Made by a program: the position numbers and the translations under genes | NCBI RefSeq assembly: GCF_026571515.1 | Contig: NW_026855927.1 | Location: forward strand, 1-64,000 | DNA: 64,000 nt | Direction of reading: 5' to 3' | Origin: Ruditapes philippinarum | Lineage: Eukaryota | Part shown: in pieces, positions 585 to 54,780 of the stretch | Numbering within the stretch: position 1 is the first letter of the stretch | Layout: each line of letters opens with the position of its first letter | Notes under the pieces: generated by a model | The model's input: only the letters and a program-made list of their open reading frames with translations | Database searches by the model: none | Told to the model about the DNA's origin: nothing

Positions 585-2122
585 TTAGCTTTCTTGTCTT
601 CTAGAACGTCGACGAATCAGTGTTTCGTAAAGGCTTAAATCTTTATTTTCACCAGTTCTCCTCCGTCGATTAAACTCTTCTAAACTTCCGACTCCAATTC
701 CGTTAGCGACACCCGCAGATAAGCCCCCATCCCGACACATAGGACTGCCGCCACAAAATCCACCCATGTAGGGAAATCCACGAGTCCCACCTCTGGCTCC
801 TATATAACCTTCACGAATACCGCCACGATCACGTTGACCTTGACGATCTAATCCTTCCTGCTGTGCTTCCGGTCTCTGGCGTCTTGGCCTTTGTACTCTT
901 TCTCGCGGACTTCCAGCTGTCCTTGGCTGACCAAATCTGTTATCAGACATTCTTGGTTGAAATGATGTATCCACGATGGTGTTTTCGTAATTCTGTGGAG
1001 GGTTGACATCATATGACTGAGTACCAGTATCATATATCGGGTCGTAAGTCTGAGCTCCGTTTGGATTTATTTGATCTACCGGCATACCACCTCGAGGTTC
1101 TCGTGAAGCATCGTTACCAGAAATGCCATACCCTATAATGACAGCATTGATTAGGTGTTTGTTTGCTTTACAATATATACCTCTTTAAAAAGTACCTAAC
1201 TTTTGTAACGACAATTTTCATTGGATAGGCATGATGTTTATATAGTCTATATTCACGGCAGCAGTAAATTTAGGAAGTAAATTAAATATTCTTTCCTCAA
1301 ATAAAGCAAATCTGCAGTATAAATTCGTTATAAATATTTATGCCCATTAATGACATTATGCCCATCCAAGGATATATAGTGAATAAACAGGTGGAAACAA
1401 ATGTTGGTCAATAACCCTTTTAACAGTCAATCTTTTGAAATAATAGTCATTTCAGCTCAACTTAACAATGACAAAATAAGCACAATGTCACTTAAATGAA
1501 CTTCAAGTTCGCCTTTTCGAATTAAGTTAAATTTCTCTTTTTTTTAAAAAAAATATGGATGGTTACACAGTTCTTTTCTAAATTGAATATTGTTGATTTT
1601 AATATGGTTAGACAACTGTCATTTTCTCACAATATAGCCGTGTAATTCTAAATGATTTCTTAAATATGTATTTTCTTTTTTTAGAAATAAAGGTATATAA
1701 AAGATTAGTTGTAAATGTAATTATTTTAGCTGTTATGTAATTCTCATATAATTACCTTGCTCTAAATAAGGTTGGCGAGTCATTCTCCTTCCGTGTACCG
1801 CTTGTGTAGGGTATCCATGTTCCGGAGAGATAGCACCCTGAACGTTTTGATATAATCTATGGCTTGAGGGCATCATTCTAGGATCATAATTATTATATTC
1901 ATAGTTTGGAAACATGAATTCTGCTTGACCATGACCGTATCCAGTATGCAAAGGTCTGAAACCATTGTCTTGGCTATAGACCAGGTGGCTGGGGTGACTG
2001 AGTAAATAATCCGGTACATGGCTCCTATGTCCATGTAGTATTCCAGGTAGGGGTGGTAAATGGTAGTCGTGTCCTTTACTGGTTTGTACAAGTACAAGAA
2101 GAATTCCCAAGAAGCGAGTCAT
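585..2122 (-). CDS. Secreted low-complexity His/Tyr/Pro/Gly/Arg-rich protein (gene A), two coding exons join(1756..2122, 585..1132), 304 aa
   Basis: ORF 1733..2122 begins with a signal-peptide-like MTRFLGILLVLVQTSKG. The donor CAAG|GTAAT at 1756/1755 is phase 1. The acceptor TCATTATAG|GG at 1133/1132 restores the frame (GYGISGNDASREPRGG) into ORF 585..1085, and 367+548=915 nt. An acceptor TTTCTAG| at 2129 precedes the ATG. The upstream exon was not located. Confidence 0.85.
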
Positions 2123-5100
2123 CCAGATCTAGAAATAGATATAATTATATGATGTTATTATTTCAAGAATTACCGTGATATAATAAAGGCCCATTATGGT
2201 ATCGAATTGATATCGTTTACTGTTCTAAAAATATACTCATTTGCCACATTGATGATTTATGTTTGTTTCTGTTTGCTTTGTTGGCAGTTGGTATAGTTCA
2301 AGTGAATCAGTATTTTGTATGGAAGTCATTGAAATACTATTTTGTTTACATGTTTGCTACCTTTATCACACATGTTCTGCGCTTCTTTTATTAAGTTGTA
2401 AAGCATCTAACATATATTATGTTTTTTGTTTTCTTTTTGTTTATTTTTTTTTCACTTATATTATTGGAGAGGTCATCAGACCTCTCCACGGTGTTCAGAC
2501 TGATTGCTGGCGGCATCCATTTTTGCGTATCTGATTGTAGTGAATGCATCTCATTTACAGCTTAAAACCATTAGGAGCAGTCTACAAAATTTGTTTTGCG
2601 CATGCTCCGTTTCAAAATACGACTTAACTTAAACGAAAAATTAACATCGGAGTGAACAAATCGGTACATAGAAAATCGGAAAATATCATTTACGTTACTT
2701 AGCGCTACGTGGATGTTTCATTTCGTTCTAATGTTTTAAACTGTATAAATCGATTACAGTATTGTTTTCTGAATAGCATTTTACTATTTCATATTCCGAT
2801 AAATAGTGACAGTGACGATAAATAGTAACAGTGAACATTATAGCTACACTATTATATGACCGAGTGAACCATGTACCGAAATTTTGCTGCAAACGGTATG
2901 ACTAAGTAACGCAACGGGGATTTTTTGGCGCAAATGACACAAGTTTGATTTTTATTAAAATATTGTGGTTGAAGGCATGCAGCTTAATATTCTGTTTATT
3001 CCAATCAAATGAAATAAAACATTTTTATGTAAATCCTGGACTTAAAATTGTCTGATAAACATGCTTTATGCCCGTTTTGGAAAATGTCGAGGAAATGTTT
3101 CCATATTCTTACCAAAACATTAACCGAAAATTTGCTTATTGAATTTTACAAGAAAATTTGATACTACTTTTGATATGCATATCATTTATTCTAATTTAAT
3201 TCCCTTTGTAGAAAAAATATCCCTAATGCGCCAAGAAAAAGTCCATTTCTCCGGCATATAATCTTTCAAAACATTAAAAAATGAAGTGTAAAACAAACTT
3301 TCATTATGATACTATATATTCAATTTATATAATAAATTCTATTTTGTTAAATAATAATAATTATTGTAATTTATAACCATTCATTGTGTCTTTTTTTCCC
3401 CAAATATTTTCGAATTAAACAAATCTCCTACAGCAGCAAAAAGACGCATGCTTCTTTTTAAAGAAGCAAACTTGTAAAGAATATTGACCCCAAAAAAGGG
3501 CTGCCACTTTTGGTAAGGGAGGTAAATATTGTAACAATCAGGAACTATATCTATAACCTCTGCATAGTTGTCTTCTGTCGAGTATTAACATCTAATCTTA
3601 ACAACAACAATATTAGTTTTTTGAAGTAAGAATTCAAGCAATGAATTTAACATCTCTATTAAAAAAAAAAGGAAAAAAGGCAGAATCCCTAAAGAACGCC
3701 CAAAACTGCAAAATTAAGTATGTTGCAGTAACCCCTGTTTAACAACTAAAAAGGTTGTTTTCTAAAAGGTGTTACGAACTTGTACTATATAAACGCACTA
3801 ATATGTACCAACCTTCATTTATTAACCAACGATGATGAAAAAAGATCCCTCTTTATGACGATGTGTATCTTTTTTTATTATTAAATTGTGAGAATAATCA
3901 TAGTTCCACTGAAATGATGTTTAAAACTAAATGCATCTAGTGATGTTTAGCTTATTAAATATGATTAGACCGTGCTGTACTCAATTGATACATTATATAT
4001 AGTAACATGGGTTAAGTCGAACGACGCATAACTGGAATTACTCTGAAGAAAAAACCCGGAAAAGAATGTAGATTGTTAACGACATCATATTCATAAATTG
4101 AAGTATGGAAAACCATCAACATAATAATTAACATTTTGATATAAGGATATCAATGTCTTCCGTAGCTTTAGAACCAATGATTAATTATTAATTAAAATTT
4201 GAAATTCCTGTAAGTATGAAGTAATGTCCTTGGTTCACCAGCGTGAAAAAGTACTACAATGCACTTATTGTAAGGAAAGAGTGGACAGAGGCAGTTTTAT
4301 CCATATCATATCTCAAATTGTATATTCCTAGCTCAAAACGAATATATTTTATAAATTATAGCCTATGGTCTACTTATGATATTCACAAGGCCTGCCACAG
4401 GGTGCAGTTTTTTGACAGTCAATATTTAAACAATTTGTCAGAATACAATGACTGATTTGTATTTGACTGTAAGGACATACTATCAAAGGCTACTGTTGAT
4501 TGAATGAGTTTATACTTTAATTGAATAATAAAGTTCGAATATACCGACGATATGAGAATTTACAATGGTTCTTTAACTTTTCTTATAGAGAATATGTGTT
4601 GCGCAAAGCGGGAGAGTAAATATATAAAATTCTCTCATTTTGAAATTAATTTAAAACGGAACATATATTTTTATCTTGCTCGCCAGGCTTATTAAAATGG
4701 CGCCATTTAATGATTTTGACGTTATCGCAATGTAATAAAAATCTTTTCTTTAGGCGTTCTACCATACCCTATTTTTCAAACTATAAGCTAAAGCAAAAAT
4801 TCTATATTCACCCAAGTCTCAGTGTGATATATTAACTGGTATACACCTAATTGATGTATATATTTTAGTATATCGTTGAAAACAATAAGATAATGCTGTT
4901 TATTTATTGGTTGTGGTGTTAAATTTTACGAATACATCATCTTTCTCGTGGTTGAAAAAATAAACGCTTCAAGCCAAAATTTTGATACTTTCTAAATTTG
5001 ATTTTCTTTTAAATTATCACATATATAAAGAATTTAGATTTTTTGGTATGCATTTGTATCATAAATTATAATAACTTAAAAACCGACAGCTAAAAATAAT

Positions 5101-6060
5101 CATGAAATGTTACATAAAAAAAATAATCTAAAATTACACGTGTGAAATATTGTTTACGTAAAGCACATTTTGTTGATTATTTTCGGCTGTAGGTTTTTAG
5201 GTAATTAAACATTTTTTAAAAAATCTAAATTTCTTTGAATATCAATACAAAAATTACTTAACCAAATATCACGACGTTTCATAAATACATAATTATAATA
5301 TAATTATTGTGAAATATGTACATTTTGTTGGTAAGGTTTTCGGCCATTAACGTTTAGTGTACATTAAATCGTTACCTAATTAATACCTGTTTGAAAGGTA
5401 ATCATTTATGGTATGAACAAAGTTATTTCACGTCTACAACCATTAAAGCAATAACCATGACAGCTATCTTACCACTTTAACAATATGATGAATGGAGATT
5501 TAATGGAGATTTTAACAGTCGTCAGTTGTTATTCTGTGTATATGATAAGAGTTCTTTCACCTGAACATACTCCATTATTTTCAATCGCATCTTTTCGGCC
5601 CTTTCCGTCAAACTTCGGATAAGAACCCCCAACACAATAGTAAAAAAATAAGTAGAACGGATCCGAGGTTTGTGTTATTACAATAGCCGAGCTGTTCCGA
5701 TTGCATTATTATATGATTCTGCACATTTTTCACATAAATTTTCAGTAGATAGTCGTGTGGTTCATATATAGAGCTGCTGAGAATTTATTATTATTATTAT
5801 TAGCTTTACAATAAAAGGACACAATCGTGCAGACTAGATATTTGTTTTGACAAGTTATATGGCTGTGTTAATAGAACCGATTATACTGAGCCATATATCA
5901 TATCCAAAACCTTCACAAATTTTAATACACAGGGGTTCTTCCGGTTACAAAATAGAGCTACTAATATTATATTTTTTTTACATTTTTTTCCAGACTTAAT
6001 GATTCCATGCAAATCACAAAACGTGTAATAGCCTCACAATTAGCTTAAATAATCAATAAT

Positions 6061-6297
6061 TGAGCCGCGTCACGACAAAACCAACATAGTGGGTTTGCGA
6101 CCAGCATGGATTCAGACCAGCCTGCGCATCCGCGCAGTCTGATCAGGACCCTTGCTGTTCGCTATCAGTCTCACTACTTGTAATAGAGTTGGTAAGCGAA
6201 CAGCATGGATCCTGATCAGACTACGCGGATGCGCAGGCTGGTCTGGATCAATGCTGGTCGCAAACCCTCTATGTTTGTTTTGTCGTGACGCGGCTTA
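6061..6297. mobile_element. Foldback MITE, about 237 bp, almost fully palindromic
   Basis: Arms TGAGCCGCGTCACGACAAAACCAACAT...GCTGTTCGCT and AGCGAACAGC...TTGTCGTGACGCGGCT are reverse complements over about 100 bp. A second copy lies at 16393. Confidence 0.9.
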
Positions 6298-8468
6298 ATT
6301 AAATAATCAGACTGGAAACCAAACAAAAATTGTCCATTGTTTTACTATTAACATCCTTAATTTGCTAAATGGGTTTTAGTTTGGAAAATTCCATTCAAAT
6401 TCAAAAAAATTAAAAAGAGAGTTCAGCATCAAAATTTTAAACTATGCTTCCAACAAGAGAATCTTATCAGATTGCACGAATCTTCAGTCTGGCCTGTTTT
6501 AATGGTTAACCACTTTTAGTCCATGTAAAGAAATTGTTTAAAAGCAGTATCTGCCCACTCGTATCTTTATTTTTCGAGGGAACTTGGCTTTTTTGAATTA
6601 CATAAATTTGAAATGCGAACAGTTCTTGAAAAATTTGAGGCGCAGCTTTTTATTGAAATCAATGAAACTTGTAGCCTTCATAGTGAGAATTTGATGGAAA
6701 TCACGTTGACGTCGAAATGATGACGTCATGACTTCCACTTTCTGCATCTCTATATTGTGCAGCCATGTAAAACCATGGCATGTCACAATATTCAAAGGGG
6801 AGTAACCATAATAGATTACAACCAGCAGTTCAACATAATATGTCTCCTTGTTTACACTATTTAGTCCTAAATTTATATTTTCACAACTATTTTGTAAATA
6901 ATAATGTATTGCGGAAACTCATACGTGCAACTTACTCCACGAGAGCGCTGGTAAATTGTTTTGGAGCCAATCGAAAAAAGGTTATTCCATTTCAGAAGAA
7001 AATGTCTGGTCTTTTCTGTGCAAGGTGAAAGCACCAGTACGAGGGATCTCGGGTTTTTTTAAAGTCTCTTCCAAAAACGTGTTATTAGTAATTAAAGTGG
7101 GAGTAGCTGTGGATCGAAGATGTTGCCATTGGATTATTTTTCGAGAATGTTATCTCTTGGTTGTTCTTTTTATGATTTTACAATTGACAGGTCCAAGTTG
7201 TTAACAGAGCTAAAATTCATAACATAATGAGGCAGTATAGAAGCTAAATAATGGCTAATCATTTTTGTCCTTATCCTTTAACCTGCTTAATTCCTGAAAT
7301 TGACTAGTCCTGCTTCTAGTATTTGAAAATCATTAAAAAAAATTAAGATATAACTTATTAACACCAATATATTGTCAATTTTAGAGACCGAGATCAAGTT
7401 GTGTGACATAAATGGACTAGAATTGTTTTCGGGAATTTTATACCTGGTGTTGTCTGTGAACACGGTTTTCAAAATACCTCTCTATCTATGGTAATAGATG
7501 TTTAAGTGTGCCTGTTTTTTGAAACTTGATTAACGTTGCCAACAATCCTCAGCTGCTCAATGATAACAACAACAACAGATCCTCAAAAAATAGGGATTAA
7601 TGGAGAAAGGTTAAGAAAAGTCTTTACTATTGAAATTTACCATTCATAATGAAATTTTTGAACGTACAGTGTACGTGGTATAAACGTACAGTGTACGTGG
7701 TGTATTGAGCACAATGGTTATAAGGAAATGCACGGTATATCTTTATGATTCACTGACGTTGATCGATCATTAGCTATAACCATAAAAAATGCATTACGTC
7801 ACATTAAATCACAAGGGGAAATTTTTTCTTCGTCTGACAATGTATTCACTACTGTATTTATTCATGCAATAAATGTGCACATATGACTGTAAGCCTCGTG
7901 TAAGAACATAAATAAAGTTTATAAATACACGTACACGTATTAGTCTTTCTAGAAATTCCAAAAAAAAAAATAACATTGTAATAATATCCCATTATCTTAA
8001 ATGTTGTTTCATGGTTTACTAGCTTTTTTTGTATAAACTTTCAAAGGTACGCGATTTACATCATTGACAGTTTAAGACAAATCATCACTTAGAATTTAAT
8101 GTTATTTATTTCAATTAAAGCAAATAAATATTAAACAAAAATGCATTATCAGCAAAAATTTAACCAAGGGAGGCAAATGTCAGACAGGCTGTTTACGTTA
8201 TAATGGAGTTAATTATCCTTATTCATGAAGGTCTTGTCCGTCTAAAACACTCTCCAGCATGTACTAGTATCGTTGAGTTATCACAAGTAATTCTGCTATA
8301 TGGACGCAAATGCAATGAATTTAAATATCTTATTACACAAATTGTATTATGTCTTTTCTTTTTTTCACGAAATCATATTTTCATTAAAGGTTATAAAAAG
8401 CTAGTTCGTTATAAACACCATATACGTTCCATCATATAAGTAAAATAGTCAAGCTTCTTCCAAGATAT

Positions 8469-8771
8469 TTAGTGGTTTGGGAATGGGTACCATCCTCTTC
8501 CGTTTCTATCTATGCCGTCAGCATGCCTTTCTCCAATTCCAGCCCCTCCCCATACTGGCAGCCCATTTCTTCCACCTGTGCCGCCAAAGAAATCTTGACT
8601 ACCTATGCTCCCTCCGCGGCTTCTGCCAAAACCGCTGCCAGAAAATCCTCTTTGGAATTGCATCGGGTACTGGAATCCTCCCGGGTAAATGGTTTGAAAT
8701 GGATATTGTGCTTTTGTCACGGTGATACACACTGTCAGCAAACAGCAACATATTGTTATTGGGAACTTCAT
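8469..8771 (-). CDS. Secreted Gly/aromatic-rich peptide (gene B), 100 aa
   Basis: The acceptor TTTTTATTTTTCAG|A directly precedes the ATG at 8771. Signal peptide MKFPITICCCLLTVCITVTKA, mature QYPF...WGGAGIGERHADGID...PNH. GC-rich island, with AATAAA downstream at 8105-8110 (minus strand). Confidence 0.88.
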   Translation of the reverse strand: MKFPITICCCLLTVCITVTKAQYPFQTIYPGGFQYPMQFQRGFSGSGFGRSRGGSIGSQDFFGGTGGRNGLPVWGGAGIGERHADGIDRNGRGWYPFPNH

Positions 8772-8924
8772 TCTGAAAAATAAAAATGTAAGTACATTTT
8801 TTTGCAGCCATTTGAACACTTAATATAAAAGAGACTCAACTGGTGGAGAAATGAACGGAAATTGTGCACACAATTTATGGTTCTCAAACCTGTTGATATC
8901 ATTTAAAGTCAGGGAAGTGCAGAG

Positions 8925-10705
8925 TCAGCACGGCCTGCAAATGTCACATATTGGTTGAAGCTTGTAAATGTCATATAAAGTCATGCCAGTCAACACATGT
9001 CCTTAAGAGTAAGGCTGGCATGCAGTTATCATAAAATTAGACAAGTCTGCAGTTGTCATGCCTGCAGATATTATATAGAGTCAGACAGCTTGTAGATGTC
9101 AAATAGAGTCATGCCAGCCTGAAGATTTTATATTGTATCATTCCAGCTTGCAAAATTTATATTGAATCAAGTCAGCTTGCAGAACTTATATAGAGTCAGG
9201 CTCGCCTGCAGATGTGATATAGTGTCAGGTCAGCTTGCAGAACTTATATAGAAATAGGCTGGTCTGTAGATGTGATATAGAGTCAGGTTAGCCTGAAGAT
9301 GTGATATAAAGTCAGGCTAGCCTGCAGATGTGATATAGTCAGGCCAGCCTGCAGATGTAATATAGAGTCAAGCCAGCTTGCAGATGTGATATTGTCAAAC
9401 TAGCATGCAGATGTGATAAAGTCAGGCCAGCCTGCAGATGTGATATAGAGTCAGGCCAGCCTGAAGATGTCATATAGAGTCAGGCAAGCCAGCATAACTT
9501 AGATAGAGTCAGGCTAGCCTGCAGATGTGAAATAGAGTCAGGCTAGCCTGCAGATGTGATATAGAGTCATGTTAGCCTGCATATGTGATATAGAGTCAGG
9601 CCAGCCTGCATATGTGATATAGAGTCAGGCCAGCCTGCAGATGTGATGAAGAATCAGGCTAGCCTGCAGATGTGATATAGAGCCAGGCCAGCCTGCATAT
9701 GTGATATAGTCAGGCCAGCCTGCAGATGTGATATTGAGTCAGGGTAGCCTGCAGATGTGATATAGAGTCAGGGTAGCATGCAGATGGGATATTGAGTCAG
9801 GGTAGCCTGCAGATGTGATATTGAGTCAGGGTAGCCTGCAGATGTCATATAGAGTCAGGGTAGCCTGCAGATGTCATATAGAGTCAGGCTAGCCTGCAGA
9901 TGTGATATTGAGTCAGGGTAGCCTGCAGATGTCATATAGAGCCAGGGTAGCCTGCAGATGTGATATTGAGTCAGGGTAGCCTGCAGATGTCATATAGAGT
10001 AAGGGTAGCCTGCAGATGTGATATTGAGTCAGGGTAGCCTGCAGATGTCATATAGAGCCAGGGTAGCCTGCAGATGTGATATTGAGTCAGGGTAGCCTGC
10101 AGATGTCATATAGAGCCAAGGTAGCCTGCAGATGTCATATAGAGCCAGGGTAGCCTGCAGATGTCATATAGAGTCAGGCTAGCCTGCAGATGTCATATAG
10201 AGTCAGGCTAGCCTGCAGATGTCATATAGAGCCGGGGTAGCCTGCAGATGTCATATAGAGTCAGGCTAGCATGCAGATGTCATATAGAGTCAGACTAGCC
10301 TGCAGATGTGATATAGAGTCAGGCTAGCATGCAGATGTCATATAGAGCCAGACTAGCCTGCAGATGTGATATAGAGCCAGACTAGCCTGCAGATGTGATA
10401 TAGTCAGGCCAGCCTGAAAATGTGATATAGAGTCAGGCTAGCTTGCAGAACTTAGATAGAGTCAGACTAGCCTGCAGATGTTATATAGAGTCAGGCAGCT
10501 TGCAGATCTTATAAAGAGTCCGGCCAGCCTGCAGATGTGATTTAGAGTCAGGCCAGCCTGCAGATGTGATATAGAGTCAGGCTAGCCTCCGGGTGTCATA
10601 TAGAATCAGGCAAGTCTGCAGATGTGATATAGAATCTGGTCAGCTTGCAGAACTTATATAGAGTCAGGCTGGCCTGCATATTTCATATAGACTCAGGTCA
10701 GCTTA
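8925..10705. repeat. 29-bp minisatellite array (about 60 units) in the presumed intron of gene B
   Basis: Unit GCCTGCAGATGTGATATAGAGTCAGGCTA, homogeneous in the centre and degenerate at the edges. Confidence 0.97.
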
Positions 10706-11493
10706 GGCCAGACTTAATTCTGTTGACAATTTTGTTTTAACAAATTGATATCAAAATCCAACAGTGAATATATCTAAATTCAAAACTTGGATATTTAATT
10801 AATATACAAGTTTAGATGTGTTTAGATCAGAACACAGTTAATTTAATCACACATGCATGTATATAGAGATAAAAAGAAACACGTTGAATTGTAAGGGGAG
10901 ATAATTCGCATTCCAAAATGTTTTTTTTGTTGATACAGATTCATTTCCCTCTCCAATGTAAGAGAAGTTTTCTTTCATAAACTACACTATAAAGAAATAG
11001 CTTGAAAAAGGTAGAATTCATATTTAGAACAGAGGATGGTCATAACGAATATGTTTGCAAAACATTGTTGCTGTTTTTTTCCGGACACTTGGGGTTACAA
11101 GTTGTCCTTCAAGCTTTACCTTTGGGGATACTTCAGGTGCTTCTAAGAGAAAGACCTCAGGTGTTCTTTGGTATATTATTTTAGACAAAAGCGTACTAAT
11201 GCTGACTTTCCTTTTAACATGAGATAATCAAAACCCTGGCGGTATTTGAACCCATGGCAGTTAGAAACAATTCTAATCGGAATACAGTTTAATCTTAATG
11301 CATGTTTTCCGATGATATATATAATATATTCTAGTTTTTTATAAACAATTAATTTCATTTATTTCATTAACCGGAAACCGATGTTAGTTTTAACTTTTGA
11401 ACCAAAATCTGATGGAAATTTAAACAATATTTTTGTATTTGTTTCTTATTGACATTTTCTATTTAAACGTACTATTTTCGATTGCATGCTTAT

Positions 11494-11646
11494 NNNNNNN
11501 NNNNNNNNNNNNNNNNNNNNNNNNNNNNNNNNNNNNNNNNNNNNNNNNNNNNNNNNNNNNNNNNNNNNNNNNNNNNNNNNNNNNNNNNNNNNNNNNNNNN
11601 NNNNNNNNNNNNNNNNNNNNNNNNNNNNNNNNNNNNNNNNNNNNNN
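11494..11646. other. Assembly gap
   Basis: N run. Confidence 1.
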
Positions 11647-12049
11647 TGTTATCGTTGTTGAGTACAGCAAAATACAACAACAGATTAGGTAGATTATAAA
11701 TGTAAAAGAAATAATAATCGAAGAATAAACTTTACCGCATCGCTCTTCAAATTGTTTAATTTTCTGTTGTATATCTTCATAATATTGTTACTATTCTTAT
11801 GTGAGTATTTTTTATTTTAAGTTTGCAATATTAGTTTCACAAATATAATTTCACACAGATATTATTAGATTTTAACTATTTTCTCAATCTCGAAAAAAAA
11901 TGAAGAAATTATTTCGATACAAAATTGGCAATAAAATTATAAGAAATATTTAGAAATTAAAGAATGCTTATTTTTTTTAGTATTTCTTATTAAAAAAATG
12001 ACCAAGACTTTCCTTTGTCTATATTCTTATTAGCATAAAGAAATCTTAC

Positions 12050-12150
12050 CTGTATAAAGTGTTATAACCTCCGTTGTAAACCGCCGACTAAGTTCTAGTT
12101 ATTCTGCAAGGACAATAACTTATGTATTACTTACTATGACCATGGTCATA
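12050..12150 (-). other. Candidate non-coding first exon and promoter of gene B
   Basis: Strong donor ACAG|GTAAGA at 12050/12049. The adjacent plus-strand TGTATAAAG resembles TGTATTAAG and TGTATTGAAG next to the donors of genes C and D. The 5' limit is uncertain. Confidence 0.45.
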
Positions 12151-14754
12151 AAACTGAAATAAACCTTTCATTTATGACATTTTGTTACGAATGATCAGTG
12201 GGCGAAACTCATTACAAGTTTTCATTAGGCCTGTCATTGGGCCTTATAAGAATACGCTTTCAATTAACAACCATTACGCATGTCCATATGTTTACATTTG
12301 ACAATATACATGTCTGTAATTAAAACTTGTAATATATGGCGGATGTAATTAATGTTTATTTCTGTTATACAAACGCCAGAGAAAGAGCAAGCAGACGATA
12401 ATGACGAGTGTCAAAATATCACATATTACCCATAAATCATTGCAGGTGTTATGTTAATAGTAGACAATGACCAAATGAACTGATGACTTTACTTATGGTC
12501 ATTATACATGCTGACAGGACATTCCTTTAGGTAGTTTGACCTCTGTCCTTGATCCAGGATTGTCTTAATTATGTTCCTGATTTAGGAGAGATTATGGTTT
12601 ACTTTTCCAATATCATTGGAGAAGCTACGACATGTTATATGTAAGACAATCTTTAATTTATCCGACTATAACATATAACATTGTGTATCATCTTCAAAAT
12701 CATTTCGTTTTAAATAGTAATACATTTTATTTCAGATTAAAGCGTTGGACGTCATTCCCCCCTTTGAAAAGATTATACGGCTTTAGTTTTGTCCAGGGTA
12801 TGTGTGGCAACATGATAAAACATAATAAGTATATAAATAATGTAGTTATTATTCCTTAATGTATACATTAACTTAATGTAAAGAGATGTTCACAATATTT
12901 AATAGGAAAAAAACTAAGTCATCGAAACACTATTTGGTTTGCAGCGTAGGTCAAACCTTGACATCGTATACTGGTGTCTCATATTTCCGTGGTACTTAAC
13001 TGTTTAACACAGACAACAAAAGTTAGGAAAATAAAACTTTGGAAAATATGTTGAATATTGTAGGAAAGACATGTCAATTACATCATAGTTTATACCATTT
13101 AATTGTTACGTATAAGCAATTATGTACACAACATTGCAACTAACACCCATCTGCTGCCTAGTTAGTAAAGTTGTGTTCTTGTATTTCTAAGGCAATTACA
13201 TTTTAAGAGTTTCAAAAGCAAAACCTATAGTTATCTTTATTTTTTAGTATATCTATACCTAGCCTCGTCTGAAAGTGGGGATTTTCTATAAGGCATTTAT
13301 CAAATATCTTAATGGTTGTTTAACAAAGACAATATACGAAAAGTAAAATTAAAATTGTGAAATAATTAACTTTGCTCTTAATCTGAATAAAATAATATGT
13401 TTTCTCAGTCCTATATGTAACATTTTGATAAAATAAATAAAAAAAAGAAAAAGTTAAACTCCTGACAGGTGCATGGCGTCTAGGAGGCATTTGAGGCTGT
13501 TTATGCCTAATACCTTGGAATTATTAGTACCTCGGAAATATGAGGCACCAGTATACCCATTTTGTGTATTCATACTTTTGTGTTTGAGATCAATATCAGA
13601 AGTTTGAAGGAAATGGCCTAGAAGTTGCGATTGAGGACCTCAAACTAATAAACAGACCGAATACGGTATAATATAGTAAAAAGTACCACCACTAGACAAC
13701 TGCATCCAAGCAAGTTTTCACGACCGTGTGGTCTAACTAGTTTATATACTGTTGGTTACTCAATTTTAACCCTTACGACGCTAAATGTATTAAATGTATT
13801 TGTCCATTTATTTTTTAAATATACAAAACCATTCAACAGTTTTTGGGATTTTTTTTGCTTACAGTGTAGACCATGTTCAGTCAAAACGAATGCAGTTTCA
13901 TTTATTATCATATACCAGCAATAAGACAGTAACGTTTCTAAAGAAATTTCACATGAAGAAACACATATACGTTTACCAAGATCAGTTTTCCTTGTTCAAC
14001 ACCAATTATATTGCTCGTGGTGTGACGTCATGAATGTACTGAATGTACATTTATGTAATATGTAAAATAATTCTTTTGGTTTTGTTCACATTTCCATAAG
14101 TCAATCTACAGACGGTACAGTAACAAGAAACAACATCACTTGTTACGTTGGTTACGCGAAGTTGTATTCGCAAGCGGTGTGTGAACAAATAGAAATGGGA
14201 GCAAAACCTATCTATTACCAGCAGTACTTGGCTCGTTCTATTAAAACTTAGGCGTTTATTTCTATAAAATGATGTACTTTTTTAGACCATTTTCATGACT
14301 AAATAAGACATTAACTTCTGGTATGATTATAATGGGAAATAGAAAAATGATAGAGAAAATTGTACAGTTAAAAGCTATTTTAGCAGTAAGCACGACATAA
14401 TACATGTATGATATAATAAACACACAAAAATACATCACAAAACGAGATTGTCAACAGATGATGAATTCTAATTAATATTGTCCATTCATCTGAAATATAA
14501 AGAAATAAAAGATGAATGAGTATAATAAAACAGTATGATAATTGTAATTATATAAATAATAATGCCACTTGTTTTGGACTTTTTTTAAACAACTCTCATT
14601 CTTATCTTACAGAATAAATAAATAAATGAACCATTCTTAAAAAAAGGCAAACATGATATTTAAAACGTTTAAATAATTGTTTAAGATGCTTAAAACCTAA
14701 AGAAAGTAGCGCTGAATGTGAGATTATTTGTAATTAAAGTAGCGACATTTAAAC

Positions 14755-15262
14755 AATGTAGTATTTTGACTTCCATTCAAAATACTAAATCACGAGATTT
14801 TCATAACTACCGAAATGCAACTAGAGCAAAAGGTAGTTCAGGTAATTGGCAAATAAAAACCGTTTTGGAAACTTTATCACGACACAAAAAAAGAAAAAAG
14901 CTTTTGAGAACTGTAAGTAAAAGCTTTTCTACGGTTTCATGGACCTTTAATCTAAACAATATTAATATTATTTATTTCATGCTTTCCAGTGTTTTACTGT
15001 AATTTATCAGATGATTATATTCTGATTAACCACTAGTGAAATTTATAAAATATACAAAGTAATATTTTGACTTCCATACAAAATACTTAATCACTATGAC
15101 TATACTTATTGGTAAAACGTGACATACGCATAAATGGTTCAGGAAATTGGCCATTGAGTAATTTTCTGACATTATAACAGATAAAAAACAAACAAACAAA
15201 AACAAAAAAACAACATGAGAAATTAAAAATAAAAGGAATTCTTAGGCATAATGGGCCTTTAA
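14755..15262. repeat. Old diverged tandem duplication, about 300-bp period
   Basis: TATTTTGACTTCCAT.CAAAATACT.AATCAC, GTTCAGG.AATTGGC and GG.CCTTTAA each recur about 300 bp apart. Confidence 0.7.
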
Positions 15263-15685
15263 AGTTAATTATAATTGTTAGTCAAAAGGTGGGGGTTTTA
15301 TGAAAAGAAGCATTCTCTCACACTCAAACATACAACATTCTCTTCCATAAGAAAACCTTCTTACACGTAAATTCTGCATAAATAGATTTGTTATATGATC
15401 ATTATGAGTATTTTACGACTTCATGTAAGCAGACGACAAACCATTTGACATGTTTATTTCCTTTACGCAGAAGGCAAATAAAAATTAATAACATACATTT
15501 ATGATTATCCCCACAATGTAATAAATACCAAAAATAAAAGTACGGTATAGGTTAAATATAACCACCGCTATAGATATTACAAAAAAAAAACTTTATAATC
15601 AGTCATACAAAAAAGAGCCGAAATAACATTCGATAACCTATTTATTTCTAAATCATATGAATCTACTTTTGCTAAAACTTGCACC

Positions 15686-16034
15686 TTAAAGGGACTTCAC
15701 TGAAGACTTTTGACATAAAGATACTGTAAATCTTTTTTCGAGATTAATGTTCTATTTGTTGAAGATCTAGACCATTAACTTGTGTGCAAAATTTAGACCA
15801 TTTGCTCTCTCAGTTTTTCCATAATAATTGTTCTTTATTGTGAAAAAATGGCACAAAATCCACCCAAATCGTGCTAAGAAGAAGAGCTTAATACGATTTT
15901 CAAGCTATTAATTAGTATTGTACTACATTGACTACATTAATTATCTTTCTGTTTTAAGTGGCCCAGCTGATCTTTGTCAAAGTTCATTTTTAGGTTCCTT
16001 TTTAGGGTCTTGGACCTCAGGGGAGTTCCTTTAG
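15686..16034. mobile_element. Possible decayed TTAA-type MITE
   Basis: Left end TTAAAGGGACTTCACTGA versus the reverse complement of the right end CTAAAGGAACTCCCCTGA. Confidence 0.45.
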
Positions 16035-16392
16035 TGAATATTAATATGTAGCATAATATAGCATGATCCTGGTCAATTTTTAAAGTCGTTTTGCATTTTA
16101 ATTAAATAATATAATAAAATTTGTGCATTAAAAACTTAAATATGCGTCTGTCAAATACGGTATGTCACAAACAAACTATTTATGAACAATCTATGTAATG
16201 TACAATACCTATCTGATGCAAAAAAAATACTAATATTCAAAACCCCTTTCACCTTTGCTAAGTTTTTAAACCGTTTTCCATCACATTTCAATCGGCAAAA
16301 ACTCTTTTCTGATTTGCAGTATTTGAGGAGAAAAAAAAATGTGTTTTAAAGTAATGCTAATTTACTCATCATTGTGTCATATAAAAATGAAT

Positions 16393-16629
16393 TGAGCCGC
16401 GTCACGACAAAACCAACATAATGGGTTTGCGACCAGCATGGATCCAGACCAGCCTGCGCATCCGCGCAGTCTGATCAGGATCCATGCTGTTCGCTATCAG
16501 TTTCTCTACTTGTTATAGGGTTTGTAAGCGAACAGCATGGATAATGATCAGACTGCGAGGATGCGCAGGCTGGTCTGGATCCATGCTGGTCGCAAACCCA
16601 TTATGTTGGTTTTGTCGTAACGCGACCCA
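16393..16629. mobile_element. Foldback MITE, second copy of the 6061 family
   Basis: Near-identical to 6061-6297, with long inverted arms. Confidence 0.9.
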
Positions 16630-16942
16630 ATTGTTATTTATACACAATAAAACAGTATTACTGATGTTGTAATCCTGTAACAACGCGGTGAGAGCGTTCA
16701 ATTCCTCTTTTAGAACTTGGAGGTACATTCATATATAGTGATCTGTTTGGCATTAGAACTGCTAGTGTAGAATTTTGTTCTTTTTATTCTAACCTTTTCA
16801 AAAAGATAAGAACAACAAATGTACATGTAAGTATTTACAAATTACAAAAAAAAAATACAAAAAAACAAGACAACTAAAATGATTACTTTTATGATATACA
16901 GAAAGACGACTTACATTTTTATTGTATCCCCTGAGGAAATGA

Positions 16943-17128
16943 CTAGTGTCTTATACCATCGGCGTACATCTCTCCTGCCCCTGCGCCACCATAAGTACCA
17001 ACCCAACTTCCCATATACCCTTGGTCTCCTCCGATAAAGTCCAAAGGTGGTGGACCATCAAAGAAATACGGCGGCTGGGCAGACACCATACATATCATTA
17101 GGACGCACAAAACAAACACCAACTTCAT
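16943..17128 (-). CDS. Secreted acidic Gly-rich peptide (gene C), 61 aa
   Basis: Acceptor TTTTCATGTTAACAG|TTATG at 17131. Signal MKLVFVLCVLMICMVSA, mature QPPYFFDGPPPLDFIGGDQGYMGSWVGTYGGAGAGEMYADGIRH. Clear paralogue of gene D, with AATAAA downstream. Confidence 0.9.
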   Translation of the reverse strand: MKLVFVLCVLMICMVSAQPPYFFDGPPPLDFIGGDQGYMGSWVGTYGGAGAGEMYADGIRH

Positions 17129-18469
17129 AACTGTTAACATGAAAATAGAAAATCATGTCAGTTTGTGGTTAAGGGACACTGGCAAAGTTTCATGCTTTAG
17201 ATTCTACACTTCCCCTTACTTTGTGTCGGAATGATACACAGAACAGGCAGGCAGATGAATGCATGGATAATTTTTTGAATCTGATATCTTGCACAAAGAT
17301 GTTCTTAGTAAGAAAAAAAGGAAAATTGTGATTATTTTATTTTTTATTTCAAGCAAGTAGAAACGATATATACAGGTTCCTTTCCTTTTATTGTTGAAAA
17401 AAGGAATCCCAAAAATAATAAAATGTAGACTGGAATAAAACAAAATCATTGCCATAGTCTTTGGTTTACCAAGTGAACTTTTTTATGAAAATAGAAGAAA
17501 CTTATCTTGTTCATCTTCTTGCCATCAATATTTAAAAAGTGTTTTTATACTTAACAAAATAGAACGAAACAAAAGCAATATCATAAAAGAAAAAATACGC
17601 TTGCATGTACATGTCAATATACATGTTTTGTGCGACGAATCAACATATAAATGGTCTTATGCGTGTCTGTTTGTCCATGTTTAGTTTCTAGTGACACAAT
17701 TAATTTATCTTTTAAGTTTATGTTTGTTGTAGAAAATGTGCGTAAAACCATTTCCTTATTTCATTTATATGAGATACATCAAAGTAAAACTTTTTTGTAA
17801 GACACAGGTTTGTTTTGCCCAGTTTAAACAAGTAAACCTGTGCTTGTACTCTTGACCAAATGTGACACAAAAATCTCTTACAAAAGAACGAATTTAAAAA
17901 TGTGCTTAATCAGCAATATTTTTGATACAAAAATGAAATTTTGTTTAAGATTACAAAAATAAATTACGATTTCTATTTTTTCAATGATATTAAAAAGAAA
18001 ATGGTCAATGTTTAAAAATCTTTGTGAGCCTAAAAATGTGCGGATTTCAGTTAATATTCTCTCTCAATATTTTTGTTTAAGCGAAACGTTACTAAGATCA
18101 GACGAGATTGTACTTTATTGCATATTCTATTAGTGGCATCGTATTTATTGCATTATTTATAGCTTATTAAATTTTCAAAATCTTATACTTTTGTTAATGA
18201 AGATAACACAAAATTAATTACAACGTGTCTTTGTAAAGTTATAGATTAGTTTGTTTCAAGTTTGGCCTTGAAAACGAAAGTCTTTTTCTATAAAATTCTT
18301 ACAGATATCTTTTCAAAGCGAAATGATTGCATGACCTGTAAAAAATACCGACGCACAGCCATCAATATCGCTTTGAAATTTAAAAAAAATAGTGTTCATG
18401 TAATTCACTTCCTGTGATAATTAAATCATACCTTTACATCCTGAAAAATTTGATATAAATTTTACATAC

Positions 18470-18620
18470 CTTTTCTTGTATTAAGATGCTGCCGAAAAAC
18501 ACCCAGCCGCAAAGAACACGCGAATATTCTGAAGTAAAGCCCGTGATTACAAAAGAAGCCGTAGATCTTGGTGCATCGTCCGTGCTAAATTAATCATCGG
18601 CTTTTAACGCATCACGTAAT
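18470..18620 (-). promoter_or_regulatory. Non-coding first exon and core promoter of gene C
   Basis: Donor AAAG|GTATGT at 18470/18469. TATA-like GTTAAAAGCC at 18599-18608 is preceded by ATTACGTGAT. Alignable with 21204-21347. Confidence 0.65.
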
Positions 18621-19852
18621 ATGTGTTCAACATAAACCGCGTATGTAAGTCTCTCCCCTTACATAATATTCTCCTAATTTATTGAGTCCAACTGCAAAAC
18701 CTGAACTTATATCAAATGATAGAGAAAATTAGGAACAATGTTTTGAAAACCTTTTATATAACTACAAAATAAATATACATGGTTTTAAAATCTGGAAAAA
18801 GGGTGATCCCTCACAGCAAAATAACATGAAAATTGCAGACTTGGTGTGGTTGAGTCTATGAAAAAGTGCAAAATCCCTCATACTGGTTTGAGCGGTACTC
18901 AATTTCAGGTTTTGAAGTGCTGGAATCAATTATCCTGAAAGACCTTGACTGGAATAATGTAATGGTTATATTTCGCAACCACTTTTTTCTGAATTGAAGA
19001 CGCCTTTATAGTTATTTGGGTGTAACCTGATTTACTTGTATATCAATTCAGTTAAAATCTCAATATTTTCCAAAGCTTCACATAAATTAATGTTCCGTGT
19101 ATCGGCTGCTTGATATAGTCGAAATGAGTTCGGAACGTTTTTTTTATAACTAAAACTTTAAATTGTTTTTTCTTCTTTAATTTTGGATTTAATATATACA
19201 TTATGACATTTAGCTCATATTGAGCAAATGCCGATTACTTTTTAATTAATATATACTTAGATATCGATATTGAATTGAAAACAAGTTGTCACCTTTCACA
19301 GTTTTATTAAAACATATACATGACAATACACGTGCTGGTTGTCATAACACATCCGTGGAAGCAAAACGGCGTCTGTAAATATTAATTTTATTTATATATT
19401 CATTTCTAGGCAGACAACAATTAGATCTAGATCATGTTTTAAAATACAATTATTTTCAGAGTCCCTTTCAAATATTTGTAATCGTTTACTAGGTTAAATA
19501 ACGCCTCATACAAACGCGCGCACGCACGCACACACGAAAAAACGTACCATCATGTTATCATTTTATTGTTATCTTTACATTCCACTTTGAAATATATGTT
19601 TACCAATATTTTACATACGAACACATGATCTTAATGTTGATCATTTTACCATAGTTTCAATACAAGTTGAAATACTTATTTCTTTTAAAATGTTTTGAAA
19701 ATAATATGTTTTGTAACCTCTACTTTACAGGACTTCTATCAATACAATACATGCTGTTAAAAAACACTTTTATTAACATAATTTTTAGTATTCATACTTT
19801 TACTGCAAAATTTAGCAAACCAAAACTTACATTGTGAAGATGTTCGATGAGC

Positions 19853-20086
19853 TTAATGTGGATGAAAATGTCCATGAGATGCATGGTACTCTCTAGTCCC
19901 CGGCGGTCCTTCTCCGTCAGCAAACATTGGTCCGGCTCCCGCCCCTCCGTATCGCCCTACCCAACGACCCATGTAACCTGGGTACCCTCCTAATAGATAT
20001 AAACGAGGGGGTCGACGATACATGTAAGGTCGTTGGGCAAACGCCACAACTAACATCAGAGCGCCGAGCAGAAATAGCAGCTTCAT
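19853..20086 (-). CDS. Secreted basic Gly/Tyr/Arg-rich peptide with His-rich tail (gene D), 77 aa
   Basis: Acceptor TTATTTTGTAG|AAACTATG at 20092. Signal MKLLFLLGALMLVVAFA, mature QRPYMYRR...YGGAGAGPMFADG...HASHGHFHPH. AATAAA near 19769. Confidence 0.92.
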   Translation of the reverse strand: MKLLFLLGALMLVVAFAQRPYMYRRPPRLYLLGGYPGYMGRWVGRYGGAGAGPMFADGEGPPGTREYHASHGHFHPH

Positions 20087-20580
20087 AGTTTCTACAAAAT
20101 AATCATGGATTCATCAAACATACAATGTTATAGATTGTTCTGCAATGTCATAGATTGTTCTGAGCAAAAAGCACATTCATAGTTTCTAGAATGTAATTTA
20201 TTATGAGTTAAACAATCATAAAATATAATCGACTGTTCGGGACAAAAATAGCAGCTTCATAGTTTCTACAAAAAAATCATGGATTCGATAATCATACAAT
20301 AAAATCGTTTGTTCTGAACAAAAAGCAGATTCATAGTTTCTACAAAGTAATAATGGATTCATCATACAAAATTATCGATTGTTCGGATCAAAAATAGCAG
20401 ATTCATAGTTTCTAGAAAGTAATTAATTATGGATTTCTCAATCATACAATATTATTGATTGTTTTGAGCAAAAATTACAATCATAGTTTCTAGAAAATAA
20501 TTAATTATAGATTTATCAATCATACAATATTATCTATTGTTCGAAGCAAAAACAGCAGTTTGATAGTTTCTATAAAATCA
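20066..20580 (-). repeat. Tandem repeat of about 75 bp (about 7 copies) built from the gene D splice acceptor and start codon
   Basis: The unit core AAAT/AAGCAG.TTCATAGTTTCTA[CG]AA recurs near 20071, 20166, 20246, 20320, 20392, 20471 and 20549. Confidence 0.9.
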
Positions 20581-21203
20581 ATACAAGTATAATCAATTTT
20601 TTGGAGAAAATATATGTGGAATATGCATAGATGGAGACAAGAAAATGCTAAGTACTCTAATTCATATATATAAATTAAATTATTTTAAATGTATATTAAT
20701 GATAAATTATACTGAACATGATATATTCATTGAAAAACTAAGACATACTGCATATTTTCCATTACTGATAATGATAATGTAAAATAAATGAAGTTTGGCT
20801 AAATTATCTTGCTGATGGCAAAATGTTTAGGATAAGGTGCATTAAAACACGACACATTTTAATTTCACGGTCTTGTACATAGTTTGAACCTATACGTTGC
20901 TAACAACATCAAAATTAAATAAATAAAACTGTGATACATAATACAAAATGCGAAACGTAAACGCCGCTTAAAAAAGTGACAAACTGGTCCGGTGTTTAGA
21001 GCACGTATAGTCAGTGTAATAAATTTAATAAGATTGATAGCCCCCTATCTCACAGACGTAGAAAAAACGTACATTACAACTGACATGCAATTTATTGTGC
21101 AACTGAAAAAATAAAAAAAGATGCAAAATAAATCAAAATTTTAAGCATGTTACATGAGTAGCAATATTTTTATGCATTAGAACATGTACCAACAATAACT
21201 TAC

Positions 21204-21347
21204 GTTTTCTGTATTGAAGGCCACCAGTTACCGCGGAGCTCCAACACGCACGGACGACGTCTGAGCAAAATCTGACTTACACAGCTGTACCATGTATACT
21301 GTACATCTCATTTTGATTATTAAAGGCTTTTAACTGATCACGAAAAT
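21204..21347 (-). promoter_or_regulatory. Non-coding first exon and core promoter of gene D
   Basis: Donor AAAC|GTAAGT at 21204/21203. GTTAAAAGCC at 21325-21334 is preceded by ATTTTCGTGAT. Shares blocks with the gene C first exon. Confidence 0.65.
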
Positions 21348-21749
21348 CATGTTAACACGACAAAAATGCTTGTAAATCAGTTCGTTTGAAATATACATTT
21401 ATTGTGATTTATTTGGGAAGGGTTAGAAAATTGGCTGAGGTCCCGATATGTTAATGGTGTATTTTTGTCTGTAACATGTGCGCTAATGTATCATGCATTT
21501 TATATATACATTAGGATTTCTCGCAAAAATACATTTATGATCTCAAAATATCTTAAAAATTAGAAGAATTTAAAATCTGAAAATGATGCTGGTAATGTAC
21601 ATCGTTTGTTTTGTTTATTTTATTTTTTTTTTTTGGTCTTGAAATATTTTTAAAAAATACATGGTTTAATACATTTACAAGTTATAGGCAAACAGAAATA
21701 AACTTTTTAAAGCCAAAAAGCAACGAGTTGCATTAGGCAATTATATGTT

Positions 21750-22542
21750 TTTAGAAAAACTTTATATAAAACTTTCAAGTCTGAGTATAAAAGCGAACAG
21801 TACTGTAAAATGATATTGCCGTCTTCTCATCGGTCAGCATTTTGTAAATTTAGATTAGGAGTTGCACCGATTCGTATGGAGACCGGCCGTTATGAGGGTC
21901 TGAGCATAGAAGATAGAATTTGTCCTTTTTGTAACGATAATCAGTTGAAAATGAATAACATGTTTTGTTTAATTGTAAGGTTTATGATGATTTAAGAGTA
22001 GATTTATATTCTAGAGCAATAGGGCATGATAGTTTGTTCTCTGAAATGCAAGATTCTGATAAATATACTTACTTGTTTTCCAAATAAGAGCCAAAAATGA
22101 TAAGATATTGTGCCAAAACCTGTAAAAATATTTTAGATAGACGTCGTTTTAAACTCTGTAAATAAAATATTGCACTAGATGTCGAATGTTTCACACATTT
22201 GTTTATTACCTTATTTTTTATTATATGTCAGAAACCTCTTAAATGCAGTGTTTCGATGTTGATATTCATCTTGATATTCGTGCTTTTTTATTTTATGTTG
22301 ATATATGTTTTACTATAAATAATTGTTTAATGTCTTTCTTGTATAGTATTTTAACTCCATGCTTAGTTTAGATAAACTGTTCGATTTTAATGTAATTTCT
22401 GACGACTTTCTCTTTTAATTCCATAAGGAATGGCATTGCATTTATTTATTTTGTTTTAAAATATATATGTATGTTTTTATCATGTATATGCAATGATGAG
22501 ATATAAATAATGATGAGATATAAATAAAGATAAAATAAAGAT
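21750..22542 (+). mobile_element. 5'-truncated LINE 3' fragment
   Basis: RSAFCKFRLGVAPIRMETGRY...RICPFC matches the LINE ORF2 C-terminal motif also seen at 35874..36104. It is followed by a T-rich UTR and an AATAAAGATA repeat tail. Confidence 0.85.
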
Positions 22543-40174: not shown

Positions 40175-40381
40175 NNNNNNNNNNNNNNNNNNNNNNNNNN
40201 NNNNNNNNNNNNNNNNNNNNNNNNNNNNNNNNNNNNNNNNNNNNNNNNNNNNNNNNNNNNNNNNNNNNNNNNNNNNNNNNNNNNNNNNNNNNNNNNNNNN
40301 NNNNNNNNNNNNNNNNNNNNNNNNNNNNNNNNNNNNNNNNNNNNNNNNNNNNNNNNNNNNNNNNNNNNNNNNNNNNNNNNN
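40175..40381. other. Assembly gap
   Basis: N run. Confidence 1.
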
Positions 40382-54645: not shown

Positions 54646-54780
54646 NNNNNNNNNNNNNNNNNNNNNNNNNNNNNNNNNNNNNNNNNNNNNNNNNNNNNNN
54701 NNNNNNNNNNNNNNNNNNNNNNNNNNNNNNNNNNNNNNNNNNNNNNNNNNNNNNNNNNNNNNNNNNNNNNNNNNNNNNNN
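54646..54780. other. Assembly gap
   Basis: N run. Confidence 1.

Follow-up and report, generated by a model that had tools for sequence, protein, structure and literature searches.

Does a stretch of clam DNA with four short Gly-rich reading frames encode a family of secreted proteins, and what might such proteins do? The question was raised by a 64-kb window of the Ruditapes philippinarum genome (contig NW_026855927.1, positions 1 to 64,000; "the window" refers to this whole stretch), which is eukaryotic and AT-rich (~31% GC). The original prediction proposed that the window contained a cluster of four co-oriented genes, A, B, C, and D, for secreted Gly-rich proteins with a common motif. The results presented here indicated that genes A to D and their family are real, and the locus is best explained as four co-oriented paralogues in tandem, each coding for a small secreted protein. 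The genes were co-oriented as proposed, with the correction that all four lie on the minus strand. Orphan secreted Gly-rich proteins are common in molluscs; the unusual feature of this locus is a short module that can be traced between genera.

The conserved module of genes B, C, and D

A six-frame motif scan found the GGAG[AI]Gxxx-ADG motif exactly three times in the 64 kb, all on the minus strand and once in each of the genes B, C, and D. The coding sequences and motifs were as follows.

8469-8771, minus strand: gene B coding sequence (open reading frame [ORF] of 100 amino acids [aa] plus stop)
8472-8597, minus strand: conserved C-terminal module of B, residues 59-100 (alignments A3 and A5)
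8514-8549, minus strand: motif in B (six-frame motif scan)
16943-17128, minus strand: gene C coding sequence (ORF of 61 aa plus stop)
16955-16990, minus strand: motif in C (six-frame motif scan)
19853-20086, minus strand: gene D coding sequence (ORF of 77 aa plus stop, contained entirely in exon 2 as defined by a spliced RNA contig)
19913-19948, minus strand: motif in D (six-frame motif scan)

The ORFs of B, C, and D read as they had been quoted, and the motif, the signal leader, the Gln at the start of the mature protein, and the C-terminal His were all borne out. Each coding sequence is a single exon that specifies a signal peptide, a Gln at the predicted cleavage site, and a final His. Signal cleavage was judged by eye via the -3/-1 rule (a hydrophobic leader, small residues at -3 and -1, and then Gln). 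The predicted mature proteins are 79 aa for B (basic, net charge +3, isoelectric point [pI] about 10), 44 aa for C (acidic, net charge -4), and 60 aa for D (basic, net charge +4, pI 9.9, with a His-rich tail); thus, C and D are opposite in charge.

The family module is a Cys-free segment of ~30 residues that reads D-[YF]-F-G-G-x-G-G, then G-L-P-x-W, and then G-G-A-G-[IA]-G-E-x-H-A-[DN]-G. In B-type proteins, the signal leader and the Gln at +1 are followed by a variable spacer rich in aromatic residues and Pro, and the C-terminal core runs from DYFGG through GLP-x-WGGAG[IA]GE to GRG-x-YP. A profile search over 1.84 billion protein representatives recovered 14 small relatives (50-111 aa, E values down to 1e-30); two further matches were rejected as spurious. 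Two of the relatives are Dreissena polymorpha "hypothetical proteins," and further relatives lie on other bivalve contigs. Two more B-type genes were found on short marine and Joint Genome Institute (JGI) metagenome contigs that had no neighboring genes. The prediction that the motif would be conserved in relatives was therefore confirmed in Mactra and Dreissena and across bivalve families, and the family has so far been seen only in heterodont (Imparidentia) bivalves.

Outside the conserved module, each protein drifts. The relatives of B include P0003 (99% identical), P0004 (71%), and Mactra KAL4236669.1; the last 35-41 residues are nearly invariant across them, and the N-terminal half contains substitutions and insertions or deletions. 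In the comparison with the 71%-identical relative, the B module differs by a single residue. In a search of the clam's own genome, B matched the family profile from end to end (E 3.8e-27), and alignment A5 contained 22 invariant columns. For D, a 63%-identical "hypothetical protein" was found in Mactra antiquata, with the last 22 residues almost unchanged. Gene C is 57% identical to D and 77% identical to its relative P0006; a word-based homologue search on C yielded no candidate.

On a JGI contig of the same species, the near-identical relative P0003 lacks one A of the A-run that precedes the B ATG (window positions 8772-8815), which made a prokaryote-style gene caller lengthen B by 13 residues. 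This difference is a polymorphic homopolymer in the acceptor region and not another start. Further upstream, a 29-bp minisatellite of ~57 copies (84% matches, locally GC-richer) occupies 9060-10697 and starts 290 nucleotides (nt) from the B ATG, in the presumed 5' intron or promoter of B.

Are B, C, and D one family, or is the 12-residue motif a chance or convergent low-complexity match among unrelated Gly-rich genes? Some results did point to the latter. The B-type-only profile did not separate C (12.3 bits) or D (2.0 bits) from their own shuffles, which reached up to 15.3 bits; the B-D pair by itself was weak (z=2.0); and the paralogues showed no similarity at the DNA level. In Smith-Waterman tests against 2000 composition-preserving shuffles, however, C and D were clear paralogues (z=19.9), and the score was reached by 0 of 2000 shuffles for B and C (z=6.9), for Dreissena P0014 and C (z=7.9), and for P0011 and P0013 (z=7.2). 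The B-C alignment covered 30 residues, from DFFGG via the aromatic residue before GGAG to ADGI. The proteins also have a common layout (leader, Gln, aromatic residue, and C-terminal module), B-type and D-type genes are adjacent in two genera, and GGAG[AITV]GE was found in family context at only two loci of the 1.4-Gb assembly, with other hits at the control level. A chance or convergent origin of the motif is thus very unlikely. The link between B and C/D is real but short at the sequence level, and D joins the family through C.

The family is undescribed, as had been anticipated: no name for it was found in Pfam, the Protein Data Bank (PDB), the ESM Atlas, or full-text paper searches, and every named relative is annotated as "hypothetical." B, C, D, both exons of gene A, and five ORFs from the related loci described below (contigs C964 and C3298) had no Pfam-A match above the gathering threshold (best scores of 14.2 and 9.6 bits, compared to a cutoff of 25). 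Among PDB chains, a search with alignment A3 gave no hits at E<=10, and alignment A6 gave two chance-level matches (E 0.07 and 0.33). The ESM Atlas returned nothing usable for B or the A domain (best score 0.78), and full-text searches for the motif strings and the Dreissena accession numbers returned nothing or only primer artifacts. No annotated NCBI protein in the collection searched was identical to B, C, or D, and these genes illustrate what standard annotation may miss.

The mature family proteins (44-91 aa) contain 11-27% Gly, 12-20% aromatic residues, and 7-19% Pro; almost all are without Cys, and their net charges range from -6 to +6. An N-terminal Gln is predicted in nearly all members. 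The C-terminal His of B, C, and D did not prove to be a family feature, as most relatives end in Asn or other residues. AlphaFold2 models were confident only for the signal helix, with a predicted local distance difference test score of 53 for B and 46 for the A domain. The proteins probably lack a fold and are disordered, as judged from models that had shallow alignments behind them.

The window sequence is interrupted within the cluster, as follows.

11494-11646, no strand: assembly gap (N run, intergenic between B and C)

The gap is 2.7 kb upstream of the B ATG and 5.3 kb downstream of the C stop. No family ORF in the window touches it (only N-filled pseudo-ORFs span it), and its 1.5-kb flanks showed no overlap or similarity. 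The claims about coding sequences are independent of the gap; what depends on it is whether A and B are physically linked to C and D. Such linkage is plausible on separate grounds: in Mactra antiquata, orthologues of the B and D types carry consecutive locus tags on one 58-Mb contig.

Transcription and splicing

The original prediction placed a splice acceptor just before the ATG of each gene. By sequence reading, a pyrimidine tract and an AG were found 1-6 nt 5' of the ATG in B, C, D, and the first coding exon of A. When the whole 64 kb was scanned for an acceptor, an ATG, a hydrophobic leader, and an ORF of at least 40 aa, only A exon 1, B, D, and one ORF of a long interspersed nuclear element (LINE) were recovered, with C narrowly outside the strict pattern. 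The pattern is therefore too rare in the window to be background noise. The idea that A to D are chance ORFs was rejected, as splicing, conservation, and this rarity all argue against it.

Read mapping covered 16400-22399, which contains genes C and D. Spliced transcripts, which had been predicted, were found for D. In run X1, a 393-nt contig with a depth of 232 joined 21282-21204 to 20091-19831, which it joined in turn to 19372 and lower positions. The features in and around D were as follows.

21204-21282, minus strand: D exon 1 (5' untranslated region [UTR], minimum extent; the RNA contig joins 21204 to 20091)
19831-20091, minus strand: D exon 2 (RNA contig; begins 5 nt 5' of the ATG and ends 22 nt 3' of the stop)
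19320-19372, minus strand: D exon 3 (3' UTR, first 53 nt only; RNA joint 19372/19831)
20093-20578, minus strand: 3' end of D intron 1 with decoy copies (Tandem Repeats Finder and pattern scan)

Both introns (1112 nt and 458 nt skipped, respectively) have GT..AG ends on the minus strand. Thus, D produces a three-exon mRNA in which exon 1 is UTR only and the whole coding sequence is on exon 2, and the acceptor before its ATG is proven. The X1 signal came from RNA because the X1 depth was zero over introns and intergenic DNA. In addition, the share of sampled words from 19700-20300 that was present in 14 runs from 7 studies was 0.39, as expected for runs that contain exon 2 alone.

The 3' end of D intron 1 contains at least four units of ~78 nt that repeat the acceptor, the ATG, and the first codons (at ~20187, 20267, 20341, and 20413). 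Each of these decoy copies reaches a stop within 8-20 codons, and the RNA contig uses only the proximal acceptor. When the DNA of another individual (run X15) was compared with D, the listed differences included at least 18 within intron 1 and a single coding change, which is synonymous (position 20045, third position of Val14).

For gene C, an X1 contig covered 16924-17153 at a depth of ~4, and the flanking noncoding DNA had a depth of 0. Transcription of C was thus ~50-fold weaker than that of D in the same run, and the proposed coregulation of the cluster was not supported. The C contig extends 22 nt past the predicted acceptor and its ends do not match the predicted splice site, which makes this acceptor doubtful. 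A very high-copy repeat lies 150 nt downstream of C (16400-16800); it has many internal joints and strand switches, a read depth of ~1.8e4 in raw RNA runs, and a word depth of up to 6.7e6 in contigs.

Gene A and module-bearing repeat proteins

The features of gene A were as follows.

1756-2122, minus strand: predicted coding exon 1 (sequence reading; signal peptide and a His/Tyr/Pro-rich region; donor CAAG|GTAAT, phase 1)
585-1132, minus strand: predicted coding exon 2 (sequence reading; acceptor TTATAG|GG, in frame with exon 1)
588-830, minus strand: A-type conserved domain of ~70 aa with one Cys pair (sequence comparison)

The open frame at 585-1184 lacks its own start codon; upstream, at 2122, is an ATG that opens a leader and follows an acceptor. 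We infer that A is a two-coding-exon gene (2122-1756 plus 1132-585) with a 304-aa product, the splice and the frame being predicted. Specifically, the two exons were searched separately, and the frame of the join was derived by arithmetic from the donor at 1756/1755 and the acceptor at 1133/1132. No paralogue of A exon 1 was found in the genome. The last 71 residues of A, however, are 54% identical (E 4e-20) to the C terminus of a 1347-aa secreted protein on contig C3298, and the A-type domain has four copies in the genome.

The relationship between A and the B/C/D family was examined by profile-profile comparison, in which the B segment GG-x-x-G-L-P-x-W-GG-A-G-I-G-E aligned with the A Cys-loop segment GG-x-x-G-F-P-x-x-GG-F-C-G-G. 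The hhalign score of the A domain against the family profile was 36.8, compared to 12.8 +/- 3.4 (maximum 25.8) for 40 column shuffles. The probability was 47-88% and the E value was 1e-5 to 2e-4, with only 23-29 columns aligned, and A was not picked up in a genome-wide family search with a hidden Markov model (HMM). On this profile-profile basis, A appears to belong to a distantly related sister family of B, C, and D, with three more genes on C3298. The weaker motif that had been assigned to A in DGGLSAGVANGI was wrong, as that stretch lies downstream of the Cys-loop segment, which appears to be the counterpart of the motif.

The C3298 cluster consists of three plus-strand genes with the A-type Cys-loop domain, at 2819-6871, 21334-21531, and 27615-27806. 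The 1347-aa protein is encoded by a single exon and is secreted and rich in Arg, Pro, and Glu. In the other two genes, the domain is preceded by SYMGG or YMPGGH repeats and followed by GGMGGPPGMGG or GGHMGGGMPG repeats, and the composition is abductin-like.

The module itself was also traced in the 1.4-Gb assembly. HMM and DNA-pattern searches placed the GGAGIGE core in family context at one other locus only, on contig C964; the other eight DNA hits of the genome-wide motif scan were rejected as chance matches at the control level. Two co-oriented genes on C964 (215420-217826 and 223872-226676) contain the GGAGIGE core followed by NGWDGNP, and candidate signal-peptide exons with Gln at +1 lie upstream of them. 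The first of these genes runs on into GGGMHGGH repeats and ~25 PKKP-type repeats. Thus, the module is found in two settings: it is C-terminal in the mini-proteins, and it, or its Cys-loop variant, forms part of large secreted proteins whose repeats are rich in Gly, Met, His, or Arg.

Secreted proteins that are low in complexity and restricted to one lineage abound in mollusc genomes, and very few of these have a conserved, nonrepetitive handle that can be traced across genera. This family has such a handle, and it connects the mini-protein genes B, C, and D with large repeat proteins encoded at two other loci. It thus offers a testable entry into how clam extracellular materials, or else clam defense peptides, are assembled.

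Possible functions of the family

The original prediction left the function as structural or defensive and the motif as an assembly or enzyme-recognition site. The data favored, and did not prove, a role in extracellular material with the module as a docking element; we put the probability of this reading at roughly 40%. According to this reading, the signal peptide would be removed, the N-terminal Gln would probably be cyclized, and the proteins would be exported to become part of an extracellular material, for example the organic matrix of the shell, the ligament, or the periostracum. The module would serve as a docking or assembly element, and the invariant His-rich tail of D may add metal- or pH-dependent binding. 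A docking role was suggested because large secreted repeat proteins rich in Gly, Met, and His also contain this module or its Cys-loop variant.

A material role was favored because the family combines export, the absence of a predicted fold, one conserved module with a fast-drifting remainder, tandem duplication, restricted strong expression, and module sharing with repeat proteins. It was also favored because richness in Gly and Met is the signature of hinge-ligament abductin. In Pinctada, furthermore, the insoluble proteins of the shell and ligament are characterized by Met-rich regions (PMC7591529). Like the Gly/Met-rich shell and ligament proteins (abductin and Pinctada LMP and NU-5; PMC7591529), the clam family is secreted, Gly-rich, and of low complexity. 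The module genes on C3298 and C964 have Gly/Met(/His) repeats of the abductin/LMP/NU-5 compositional type, a likeness in composition and not sequence homology.

Several results weighed against a material role. Unlike abductin, LMP, and NU-5, the mature B, C, and D proteins (44-79 aa) have no repeats, and their Met content is modest. The motif strings were absent from the supplements of papers on the Dreissena genome, the quagga foot transcriptome, the Tridacna shellome, and the Pinctada Met-rich proteins (PMC7591529, including the protein sequences). The modules that tie the family to the repeat proteins are short, and their genome-wide E values are weak (0.02-1.1). Finally, two large raw-read RNA runs from 2026 contained essentially no reads from C or D, and we therefore concluded that expression is restricted by tissue, stage, or condition.

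Other secreted bivalve proteins provide a further comparison. The small mussel foot adhesives of the mfp-3/mfp-5 type and the Gly/Tyr-rich framework proteins of the shell (shematrins and KRMPs) are small or modular secreted proteins of pteriomorphs that are rich in Gly, Tyr/Trp, Arg/Asn, and Pro and are encoded by multigene families. They are not known to have a fixed, nonrepetitive module of the kind found in the clam family.

A more specific form of the material reading is speculative, and we hold it only tentatively. The ~30-residue, heterodont-restricted module might be a shared docking tag that lets B, C, and D act on giant repeat proteins rich in Gly, Met, and His, whether by capping them, by cross-linking them, or by regulating how they assemble; the clam biomaterial concerned could be, for example, the hinge ligament or the shell framework. 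If true, the docking tag would represent a small-protein/large-protein assembly code not described for molluscan materials.

A doubtful alternative is that the cluster encodes host-defense peptides, a multigene set of the linear, Cys-free, Gly-rich antimicrobial type in which D has a cationic Pro/Arg/Tyr-rich head, a Gly-rich middle, and a His-rich tail. The cationic character of D and B is consistent with this idea, but C and several relatives are acidic (net charges of -2 to -6), and the constraint falls on the near-neutral Gly-rich module and not on the cationic part. The tandem cluster with its fast-diverging N-terminal halves, and expression that is strong in some runs and nil in others, would also suit defense peptides, whereas the presence of the module in very large repeat proteins would not. 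The gene layout is a further point in favor. The Mytilus myticalins have three exons, with a UTR-only exon 1 and an intron 1 that ends right before the ATG (PMC5577615), and D resembles them in this layout, in its lack of Cys, in its Pro/Arg/Tyr-rich stretch, and in its membership of a multigene family. The myticalins, however, contain a dibasic site, and their coding sequence continues across intron 2 to specify an anionic C-terminal propeptide (PMC5577615); D has all of its coding sequence on exon 2 and no dibasic site, and its conserved part is the Gly-rich module. The clam family as a whole departs from the myticalin-like cationic type in its span of net charges and its lack of a dibasic site or propeptide, and no sequence similarity to the myticalins was found. 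In Pfam, no similarity to a known antimicrobial peptide family was detected.

The Gly-rich defense peptides of nematodes and arthropods were compared as well. The NLP/CNC YGGWG-type peptides, acanthoscurrin, and the diptericin G-domain are secreted, Cys-free, and rich in Gly and aromatic residues, often with an N-terminal Gln. They are built of short tandem repeats, whereas the clam family has one fixed, nonrepeated module, and no relation to them was found in Pfam.

It is unlikely that the genes encode peptide-hormone or neuropeptide-like precursors with the invariant C-terminal segments as bioactive ligands. The N-terminal Gln (a potential pyroglutamate) that is predicted in nearly all members, and the C-terminal 22-41 residues that are almost identical between genera while the remainder drifts, are features that such precursors might have, and gene A carries poly-Arg sites and a Cys loop. 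B, C, and D, however, do not have the makeup of a neuropeptide or prohormone: their alignments revealed neither a conserved basic site (mono- or dibasic) ahead of the module nor a terminal Gly for amidation. For a neuropeptide, it would be unusual to reach a depth of 232 in bulk RNA and to be detected in 14 runs from 7 studies, and the module also occurs inside repeat proteins of more than 300 aa.

Outside the cluster, the window has two more assembly gaps, at 40175-40381 and 54646-54780. The minus-strand segment 36070-39084 is a retrotransposon without long terminal repeats, with endonuclease-like and reverse-transcriptase-like open frames in pieces of 462, 137, 224, and 159 aa, and it is unrelated to the cluster.

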